Origin: Macrostomum lignano
Taxonomy: Eukaryota
Direction: 5' to 3'
Assembly (NCBI GenBank): GCA_002269645.1
Contig: NIVC01000659.1
Coordinates: 62,001-126,000 of the forward strand
Length of the DNA stretch: 64,000 nt
A program made the translations under genes and the position numbers. Position 1 is the stretch's first letter; every line of letters starts with the position of its first letter. Below are positions 39,889 to 41,762 of the stretch, piece after piece. Below the pieces are notes generated by a model. It saw only the letters and a list, made by a program, of their open reading frames with translations, had not been told where the DNA came from and searched no databases.

Positions 39889-41762
39889 ATGCACTTTGCA
39901 ATGCGCGCTCTGCTGCCTCTGCTGTTCGTCCTCTGCGGCGCTCTGGTCGTCGCCGACCCACTGCCCGCGGCCGACCAGCGAAGCCTTCGAGCGTCCCTTG
40001 CCGGCTTCGCCAGCCACCTGGCCGCCACCGAGGCCGCTGACGCCGCTCGGCTGGTGCGCAACTTCACGAGCTCCGCAGAGGACGTCAGCTTTGTTGAGGG
40101 CTCGGTGGACGCGGCAAAGGCGGTCCAGCAGCTGCGCTTCCTGCCCGCCCACTTCGTCAGCCGGCTGCTGCGAGTTGCCGAGTCCGAAGACTTTGTGGCC
40201 ACCTCGTTCGCGATTGAGGTCGAGGTGCCGCTGTGTCGCTACCAGCTTTTCGTCGGCTCCGCCCGGACCTCCGGAAGCGCCATCCAGTTCGGCGCTTTCT
40301 CCGCTCTCGTCTCTTGCAGCTTCGCGTCTAGGGACTGCGGAGACTGGGCGTTGCCATGGAGACGCTGCGATGAGGCGGAGTGGGGACCGGCTGTCCGTGA
40401 CATGCCGGCGCTGACGGCACTGCTCAGGCGAGAAGCAGCAAGTCGGATCCTGAGTCACCCAGCCATGGCTGCTCAACCGGCTTCACCCAGGTCTCGGAGG
40501 TCGGCGGGAAGCCAGGATTCGCTCCGCACCGGCGTGAGCAGCTTCCTGTCGAAGTTTCAGTGGTTGAGCGACCTCGTGAAGAGGCAGGAGCTGACGGTGT
40601 CCACGCCGATCCGAAGAATCACCAGCAGAGGCTTCGAGGTTTTCAGCCAGAGCGCCTCCATGCAGGCGATCGCAGAGGTCGATCCCAGCCAGTACCCCAG
40701 CTTTGTTGAGTACGCGCTCAACATGATTGACGTGTCGCCGACCGTGAGAAGCGAGGTGAGGCGGGGCGTCTTCGACCTGCTGCCATTCCTCGGACAGAGC
40801 GAGTGGCACGACTTCAACATCCTGTTTCGCTCCGGCTCGGGCGGCTCCACGAAGTTCGTCAGCGTCCTGGCGCACAACGGCGGCTCCCGGGGCTTTGACT
40901 TCGTGATTGCCGACTTCCAGACGTCGTTCCAGCTCGCCCCAGACCTGCTGGTGGTCGAGCGAAAGTCCAGCTCGATGTGGGGCGCCTTCGGCTCATCCGA
41001 GACCGTCATCCACAAAGTCCCCGCGTCCATTCGAGACGCCGACCTCGACGTTCTGATGGCGTTCTTCGATCTGGCCGCTTTCCGCAGGTTTGCCCTCATG
41101 CTGGACATCCCGGTGAGAGGCGCCCGCTTTAGAAGGTCTGCACATCTGCAGCCGTCGGGTACATCGCCGCGGTGCAGGCAGGCGTCAAGCTGTACGGCCA
41201 GATCGCCAAGACCTTCTCCACCAAGAAGACGTCGCAGATTGTCGGCAAGATCATCGGGAAGGGCTTCGACTTCTTCTCCATGCAGTCGCGGGCCCACGTG
41301 ATCTCCCGGATGAACCCAGCCTTCCTGCCGCGGTTTCTCGGAATGCTGGACCGACTGTACGGCTTTCCCGCAAAGTACCTGCCTCAGGTGAGCGCCGTGA
41401 TGGAGATGGTGCAGTTCGTGGGCCACCAGGACTGGAACAAGAACGACTTCCTGTTCGACGTGAACAGCGGCGGCCACAACGCGTGGGTGACGGTTCTGTT
41501 CAATCGGAACGAGGACGGCACCTTCAACTTCCTGATCGCCAACGTGCGGCAGCGCTTCCGGCTGGCACCGGATGTGCTCATCATCAAGGAGTCCAAGTCC
41601 GTGCTGGGCGGCATCTACCAGTCGGAGAAGTACAAGCTCCAGCGAATTCCAAGGAGCATCACAGAGGAGGACCTGCAGGCGCTGACCAACTTCTTCAACA
41701 TCTTCACCTTCAAGAGGTTCGGCCTGCAGCTGAACGTCGACACCCAGCAGCTGGACCCGTGA
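39889..41762 (+). CDS. Unidentified secreted protein with three tandem related domains separated by furin-type RxRR sites; reading-frame break near 41140
   Basis: Signal peptide MRALLPLLFVLCGALVVA. RSRR|SA at 40489-40506 and RFRR|SA at 41125-41142. ORFs 39889-41301 and 41172-41762 share GF.xFS, F..F...SGG, F.F.IA, F.LAPD.L...S.S..G and P.SI...DL..L..FF motifs. Confidence 0.8.

Follow-up and report, generated by a model that had tools for sequence, protein, structure and literature searches.

A disabled copy of a gene for a predicted secreted three-domain protein in Macrostomum lignano and the large unannotated protein family to which it belongs

The flatworm Macrostomum lignano carries, in a 64,000-nucleotide stretch of contig NIVC01000659.1 (NCBI GenBank assembly GCA_002269645.1, positions 62,001 to 126,000 of the forward strand; this whole stretch is called the window below), a coding region at 39889-41762 for a predicted secreted protein of three domains, bracketed by open reading frames (ORFs) with C-type lectin domains (Table 1). 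A preliminary description, made from the letters of the window alone, had read this region as a polyprotein consisting of a signal peptide, a first domain (D1), the furin-type motif RSRR followed by Ser-Ala, a second domain (D2), the motif RFRR followed again by Ser-Ala, and a third domain (D3). All of these elements were found in the sequence; however, that description had joined two reading frames, and the frame is broken by an 8-bp insertion. As seen in the ORF list, an ORF of 470 codons starts at the ATG at 39889 and terminates at 41301, the D3-bearing ORF lies in a different frame that is open from 41133 to the stop codon at 41760-41762, and no continuous frame crosses 39889-41762 in the window copy. 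When the region was aligned with three paralogous loci, the insertion (TCTGCACA) was found to be unique to the window copy, the other three loci being without these 8 bases. The frame changes right after RFRR-Ser-Ala because of this insertion at 41137-41144. An intron was considered as the cause of the frame change and was rejected: 8 nt is too short for an intron, the sole gt..ag pair at this place spans 16 nt and its removal would leave the frame broken, and the paralogues are without exactly the 8 inserted bases. The window copy, as assembled, cannot make D3. An exact database look-up of the 470-aa frameshifted product returned no record. The two pieces of the window copy were searched separately in the analyses that follow, and the intact paralogue P0001 was used for full-length modelling.

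Table 1. The gene, its parts and its immediate surroundings (positions are those of the window).
Feature	Coordinates	Strand	Basis
Start codon and signal-peptide-like segment MHFAMRALLPLLFVLCGALVVA	39889..39954	+	Sequence; hydrophobic N-terminus
D1 (N-domain), divergent Cys-containing copy of the family domain	39955..40488	+	N-domain alignment/HMM, hhalign, predicted alpha/beta fold
RSRR, furin-type R-x-R-R, then S-A; linker 1	40489..40500	+	Sequence
D2, first canonical copy of the ~205-residue domain	40501..41124	+	HMM, BLASTP against D3
RFRR, furin-type motif, then S-A; linker 2	41125..41136	+	Sequence
8-bp frame-shifting insertion, near-tandem duplicate of the following bases	41137..41144	+	Alignments to paralogues
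Out-of-frame tail (~53 residues) of the frame-1 ORF; stop codon 41299-41301	41143..41301	+	ORF list
D3, second canonical domain copy, in the other frame only; stop codon 41760-41762 included	41145..41762	+	ORF list, HMM, AlphaFold model
Minisatellite of 28-bp units (8 copies) in the presumed 5' leader, immediately before the ATG	39634..39858	+	TRF
Lectin A, C-type lectin domain with weak PAN-like tail	38315..39046	+	Pfam Lectin_C, 28.3 bits against a cut-off of 22.6
Lectin B, 269-aa ORF, C-type lectin domain	42264..43073	-	Pfam Lectin_C, 27.6 bits against a cut-off of 22.6
Third lectin-like fragment, upstream	36565-36897	-	tblastn, translations

The frame-1 piece of the window copy is 98% identical to P0001, a 622-residue M. 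lignano protein annotated as 'hypothetical protein BOX15_Mlig000053g1', and identity between the window pieces and P0001 was 97.6-97.9%. At the place of the insertion, RFRR-Ser-Ala in P0001 runs straight into AVGYIAAVQ. The 90% cluster of P0001 contains two further M. lignano proteins, P0159, which is intact, and P0160, which is annotated only from Met172. Four coding regions, that of the window and those of loci L001, L006 and L005, were aligned. The copies were about 98% identical pairwise, and the only indels were in the window copy, which has a 3-bp in-frame loss at 40488 beside the 8-bp insertion. The L005 copy has a premature stop at codon 133; two copies are intact (622 aa) and two are disabled. 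Over about 31.6-61.7 kb the window and L005 are collinear, apart from a 10.5-kb retroelement present in the window only. The gene had also been described as near-intronless, and the coding sequence of the intact paralogues is indeed a single exon, which is unusual for a genome averaging ~4.9 introns per gene (PMC5730564). Gene models in GenBank for the M. lignano assembly were built from a genome-guided RNA-seq transcriptome (PMC5730564), and the intact paralogues thus have transcript support.

Selection on the protein was assessed by codon-wise comparison of the four copies, using the ratio of non-synonymous to synonymous change (pN/pS), with the eight inserted alignment columns dropped from the window copy. 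Overall pN/pS was 0.18-0.19 in five of the six copy pairs and 0.42 for L005/L006. When the domains were considered separately, pairs involving the window or L001 had 10-12 synonymous and 0-1 non-synonymous changes in D2 (pN/pS ~0-0.03, compared with 0.10 for the L005/L006 pair), while pN/pS was 0.09-0.25 in D3 and 0.4-1.5 in D1. Because pN/pS is ~0.18 overall and ~0 in D2, these comparisons place the protein under purifying selection, which appears very strong in D2; D1, by the same measure, is relaxed or fast-evolving. G+C content at third codon positions (GC3) was 0.81-0.90 in the gene and 0.59-0.88 in the other window ORFs (0.76 in both lectins), and the gene lies amid animal-type genes on an M. 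lignano contig of 893 kb. Contamination or very recent transfer is argued against by this host-like GC3, and recent horizontal transfer or contamination was rejected on the basis of GC3 together with the placement of the gene in long M. lignano contigs amid animal genes.

The preliminary description had taken D2 and D3 to be clearly homologous and D1 to be plausibly so, and both judgements held. D2 and D3 were 30% identical by BLASTP (E 9e-30), and the hidden Markov model (HMM) of the family matched P0001 in D2 with E 1.6e-55 and in D3 with E 1.7e-70. D1 had no BLASTP similarity to D2 or D3. When a profile of 14 D1-type N-domains was compared with a profile of 170 D domains by hhalign, a match with a probability of 94.5% and E 8e-8 over 131 columns was obtained, and the D1-type and D-domain HMMs gave weak reciprocal matches. 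By these profile comparisons, D1 is a divergent third copy of the family domain. Where the family has the conserved KS-x-x-GG hairpin, D1 has a Cys-x10-Cys hairpin (DCGDWALPWRRC), which together with two more Cys makes up the four Cys that had been reported downstream of the signal peptide.

An AlphaFold2 model of the window D3 (42-sequence alignment) had a predicted local distance difference test score (pLDDT) of 90.2. The model opens with an N-terminal helix and a long hairpin; three short helices come next, then a meander of five strands and finally a long helix at the C-terminus. The D2 and D3 models both begin with helices (pLDDT ~78-85), which are moderately amphipathic, with hydrophobic moments (muH) of 0.49 and 0.32 and shuffle p values of 0.013 and 0.034, respectively; the amphipathic helices proposed at the domain starts are thus present in the models, if moderate in character. 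The proposed beta-hairpin with a hydrophobic tip was likewise predicted by AlphaFold, and no motif of the family is more conserved than this tip (KS-x-LGG-I/L-aromatic). The near-invariant residues of D3 are Gly40, Phe138, Pro142, Ser152 and Gly156, with Ser-x3-Gly forming the hairpin tip. The full-length model of P0001 had a pLDDT of 81.3 and a predicted template modelling score (pTM) of 0.52, and residues 1-21 formed a helix with low pLDDT.

Database searches with the sequences and the models gave no match to a described family. Pfam returned only noise for the window pieces, P0001, 10 long relatives and 42 domain instances, and no PDB sequence was matched by the protein (phmmer) or by the profile (hmmsearch). 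When the D3 model was compared with 350,542 PDB chains by Foldseek, no match was significant (best E 0.027; TM-scores <=0.2), and the full-length model also had no significant PDB match (best E 0.057, TM-score likewise <=0.2), its weak matches being hotdog thioesterases (E 0.3-0.9, probability <=0.44, TMt <=0.37), SecB and MHC. A Foldseek search of BFVD matched giant-virus proteins with E 9e-9 to 1.2e-8, probability 1.00 and TM-scores of 0.57-0.60; the top matches were the uncharacterised proteins A0A3G5A862 (Hyperionvirus), A0A3G4ZN21 (Terrestrivirus) and A0A650DA38, and weaker matches came from Edafosvirus and Borely moumouvirus. The top viral proteins share the predicted fold of the ~205-residue domain; unlike the M. 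lignano protein, they are single-domain, are without the layout of an N-domain followed by two D domains (N-D-D), have 14-16% identity, and are uncharacterised.

The protein is not an orphan. Word-indexed homologue searches gave 1, 2 and 18 matches, with M. lignano as the sole organism name, and a phmmer search that was exhaustive over 1.84 billion representatives gave 374 clusters of relatives at E<=1e-3 and 182 at E<=1e-10. The earlier statement that no family could be recognised thus stood for Pfam and the PDB, but on the evidence of these relatives the protein is a member of a large unannotated family. The sources of the relatives are almost all environmental assemblies, mostly transcripts of microbial eukaryotes; one relative is a polyadenylated transcript of 30% GC, one adjoins histone, SNF5 and IFT122 genes, and one is from the predatory protist Ancoracysta twista. 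Among the matches with a visible source, M. lignano is the only named animal and, besides A. twista, the only named organism; it is also the sole organism with a name that came up in NCBI/UniRef. The domain thus occurs also in Ancoracysta and, as judged by fold, in giant viruses. The gene for a further relative, P0106, lies at 10001-12061 of a 404-kb JGI contig (3300064746, Ga0606640_0000024; L003), in gene-dense, intron-free surroundings made up mostly of ORFans with PTH2, RNase HII, JmjC, ubiquitin and glycosyltransferase genes. By its gene content this contig looks like a giant virus, with no hallmark gene within the 22 kb viewed, and no relative of P0106 was found in IMG/VR.

Within this family the ~205-residue domain occurs one, two or three times per protein (iterated HMM), two-unit precursors being common. 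The N-D-D layout, preceded by a signal peptide, was found in at least seven relatives (P0002, P0004, P0005, P0011, P0013, P0025 and P0032), and P0013 aligned to P0001 over residues 20-621 by phmmer. By the N-domain alignment and HMM, the M. lignano protein shares with its family a divergent first domain in which a Cys-x(10-11)-Cys hairpin is conserved. When the domains of two-domain relatives were matched to D2 and D3, all 21 of 21 second domains fitted D3 best and 13 of 17 first domains fitted D2 best. These position-specific matches indicate that the D2/D3 duplication predates the lineages concerned, and the N-D-D layout is, by sequence comparison, old. A signal-like N-terminus was present in 93 of the 136 family representatives that start with Met, and two members have a C-terminal transmembrane helix.

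The furin-type motifs were then considered against this background. P0001 contains exactly two R-x-[KR]-R motifs in 622 residues, one in each linker. When the mature sequence was shuffled, both linkers were hit by the motif in 62 of 200,000 shuffles (~3e-4). Moreover, residues 196-206 and 414-417 of P0001, which are the only internal segments with pLDDT <50, are the two R-x-R-R linkers. All four M. lignano copies retain the motifs, as RSRR or RYRR in linker 1 and RFRR in linker 2. Because relatives share the N-D-D layout without dibasic sites, the 'polyprotein' of the preliminary description is better seen as a lineage-specific overlay: processing by a convertase is plausible for the M. lignano protein, as an addition to an older three-domain protein, but it does not define the family. 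This arrangement resembles that of ABA-1-type polyprotein allergens and antigens of nematodes and of Kex2-processed repeat proteins of fungi, which have a signal peptide, tandem homologous units and R-x-K/R-R at the unit boundaries. Like these, the M. lignano protein has a signal-like N-terminus, tandem homologous units and R-x-R-R at each boundary in an exposed linker. It differs from them in that its units are of ~200 residues, have an unrelated alpha/beta fold, number only three and share <=30% identity; furthermore, its sites are missing from all relatives and its cleavage is putative.

Our preferred interpretation, to which we give about an even chance of being correct as a whole, is that the window holds a disabled copy of a gene of which the neopolyploid M. 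lignano has four or more copies, ~98% identical to one another, and that the intact copies encode a secreted three-domain protein, probably cut by a convertase, that likely serves as a binding or assembly module. The predicted product of the intact copies is a secreted protein of 622 residues in which a signal peptide precedes a divergent N-domain that bears Cys and two canonical D domains. In each D domain, helices at the N-terminus would be followed by a strand or hairpin and by two or three short helices, and an antiparallel meander of five strands would lead into a long helix at the C-terminus. On its way through the secretory pathway the protein would be cut by a proprotein convertase of the furin/kexin type, giving three pieces of ~20-23 kDa. 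Given that relatives appear to work as an uncut three-domain unit, the pieces would probably remain associated, and the cut would then be a step of maturation or priming rather than a release of independent subunits. Because the near-invariant residues are structural only (Gly, Phe, Pro and the Ser-x3-Gly tip), an enzyme is, from the sequence, a less likely role for the domain than a module for binding or assembly. Our best guess for its target is a hydrophobic ligand or surface, since the model combines a sheet-around-helix design with a conserved Gly-rich hydrophobic hairpin tip. The TULIP proteins BPI, LBP and CETP, the helix-grip proteins of the Bet v 1/START type and the hotdog proteins have a similar order of short helices, antiparallel meander and long helix, and, as in the TULIP case, the M. 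lignano protein would be a secreted tandem duplication. No BPI, START or Bet v 1 protein was among the Foldseek PDB matches listed, and, with no significant match in fold or sequence, this likeness is a lead to function and not evidence of membership.

Several points weigh against this interpretation. R-x-R-R is present in one of 32 D-D linkers of the family, that of M. lignano, and missing from the other 31; P0002, the closest relative (43% identity), has no dibasic site at either boundary; the Arg content of the protein is high (8.2%), and the test of the motifs was post hoc; and, the four M. lignano copies being so alike, motifs common to them are no independent evidence of conservation. 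How the domains lie relative to one another in the full-length model is uncertain, as indicated by its pTM. Residues 444-456 of P0001 (window ~41223-41261) form a strand when the domain is modelled by itself and a helix when the whole protein is, fairly confidently each time, a discrepancy that may reflect an alignment effect or a segment that switches conformation. The 8-bp insertion may be a real allele or an assembly error. With two of four copies disabled, dosage is not under strong defence. No expression pattern for Mlig000053 or Mlig031413 was found in the full-text literature and the M. lignano paper supplements searched. Finally, the gene and its copies with their lesions, the purifying selection, the homology of the domains, the spread of the family and the motifs in their disordered setting are shown by the sequences and models, but secretion, cleavage, lasting association of the pieces and the kind of ligand are matters of inference rather than of experiment.

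An alternative that we consider unlikely is that M. lignano makes an ordinary extracellular protein of three domains that is never cleaved, and that its R-x-R-R motifs are unused by-products of an Arg-rich, GC-biased sequence. The layout evidently works without the sites in the relatives, ~0.45 motifs are expected per shuffled protein, and GC3 is 0.8-0.9. However, chance placement would have to account for motifs that fall exactly in both linkers, that are both followed by Ser-Ala, that occupy the only disordered internal segments, and that occur nowhere else in the 622 residues.

The preliminary description went further than cleavage and proposed a protease-activated, membrane-active effector paired with the flanking lectins, in which a furin cut would free amphipathic helices and hairpin tips for pore formation or fusion while the lectins supplied targeting. 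In its favour, the hydrophobic helix that a cut at RFRR would uncover (SAAVGYIAAVQAGVKLYGQI) is rich in small residues, the Gly-rich tip of the hairpin, which is hydrophobic, is conserved, a transmembrane anchor stands at the C-terminus of two family members, residues 444-456 are modelled as strand or helix according to context, and lectin ORFs flank the gene. There is, moreover, an analogy to furin-primed class I viral fusion glycoproteins, which have a convertase site directly upstream of a Gly/Ala-rich hydrophobic helix that becomes the new N-terminus. Unlike those glycoproteins, the M. lignano protein has no heptad repeats, no transmembrane anchor and no fold match to them, and its helix is in a globular domain. 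The Foldseek comparison with PDB chains, a check that had been proposed together with the claim, gave no pore-forming toxin or fusogen, and neither sequence nor profile resembled any solved protein of these kinds in the PDB searches. Furthermore, the N-terminal helices are modelled within the domain and not as free peptides, and most relatives are without the cleavage site.

The pairing with the lectins finds no support. Both ORFs exceed the Pfam cut-off, so the lectins reported at the flanks are real as domains. Lectin B is ~80% identical to lectin A in DNA and inverted relative to it (blastn), so that the two stand on either side of the gene as an inverted repeat would. In the window, the frame of lectin A is interrupted by a stop codon upstream of the domain, and in L001 this lectin is split by a 6.3-kb insertion. 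No annotated RNA-based gene covers the two lectin ORFs or the third lectin-like fragment in any of the three GenBank loci (L001, L005 and L006). The upstream lectin alone accompanies the gene in two of the three paralogous loci, and lectin B is found with it only in the L005-type locus. The claimed pairing with lectins is not borne out by these loci, and we regard a membrane-active effector as improbable.

Still less probable, in our view, is that regulated secretory organelles, such as the rhabdites or gland granules of flatworms and the extrusomes of protists, carry the protein as a structural cargo, whose proteolytic processing as the granule matures would trigger ordered assembly as in the dense-core granules of ciliates. 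The precursors of ciliate granule lattices are analogous to what this reading requires. The family is multi-copy, secreted, non-enzymatic in look and mostly known from protist transcripts, one member comes from the extrusome-bearing predator Ancoracysta, and two-unit precursors are frequent in it. However, no named ciliate protein appeared among the matches with a visible source, the unit sizes do not fit trichocyst matrix proteins, and giant viruses also carry the fold. The last alternative, that there is no functional gene but a contaminant, a chance ORF or a relic dead in every copy, would draw on the lesions in two of four copies, on an intronless coding sequence in a genome averaging ~5 introns per gene and on an otherwise protist and viral family, but it is largely refuted by the M. 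lignano contig with its animal-type genes and host-like GC3, the strong purifying selection, the transcript-based gene models and the confidently predicted fold, and little chance is left for it.

The surroundings of the gene contain further features. The 28-bp minisatellite upstream of the ATG has ~1 copy in locus L001 and apparently likewise in L006, and the 5'-partial gene model of P0159 reads through this region. Other minisatellites are at 36000-36310 (31 bp x10) and 36987-37287 (49 bp x6, copies 100% identical). The retroelement present in the window only is of the Ty3/gypsy long terminal repeat type and occupies 50330-60850, with a gag ORF at 57865-59313 (-) encoding zf-CCHC and a pol ORF at 52847-58033 (-) encoding reverse transcriptase (RT), RNase H and integrase; its insertion appears recent, because the ~10.5-kb block is missing from the collinear L005. 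A mariner-type transposase fragment lies at 48403-48891 (+). An ankyrin-repeat ORF at 31623-34649 (+) runs through a long dinucleotide-type repeat reading VSVSVS, and the next ORF begins with CLSV repeats; the L005 orthologue of the ankyrin-repeat ORF is annotated as Ank + DHHC. ORFs with a lysyl-oxidase catalytic domain (Pfam E 1.7e-45) and SRCR domains are at 5873-6454 (-), 10380-10994 (-) and 11208-11741 (-). They have the look of a LOXL-type gene with long tandem repeats, themselves coding-looking, between its exons. Adaptin_N exons of the large subunit of an AP complex are at 15277-15750 (+) and 19814-20473 (+).

Returning to the secreted three-domain protein and its family, a bolder reading may be stated, although it is improbable as a whole. 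The ~205-residue module would represent a new fold and superfamily of microbial eukaryotes and giant viruses that the macrostomid acquired horizontally, or retained uniquely among animals, as an intronless gene; two convertase sites would then have been gained, and cleavage would expose a Gly/Ala-rich helix and so arm a membrane- or lipid-active secreted complex. What is new here is the domain family; a new biological system is not demonstrated. Should the family be truly undescribed, as the Pfam, PDB and Foldseek results suggest, it would be a confidently predicted new alpha/beta fold with hundreds of members in uncultured protists and, by fold, relatives in giant viruses. The intronless gene and the patchy distribution would provide a testable case of gene transfer from protist or virus to animal, and also of a multi-domain protein becoming a convertase-cut precursor. 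M. lignano, which is transgenic and amenable to RNA interference, would be the one tractable system in which the function of this family could be studied.

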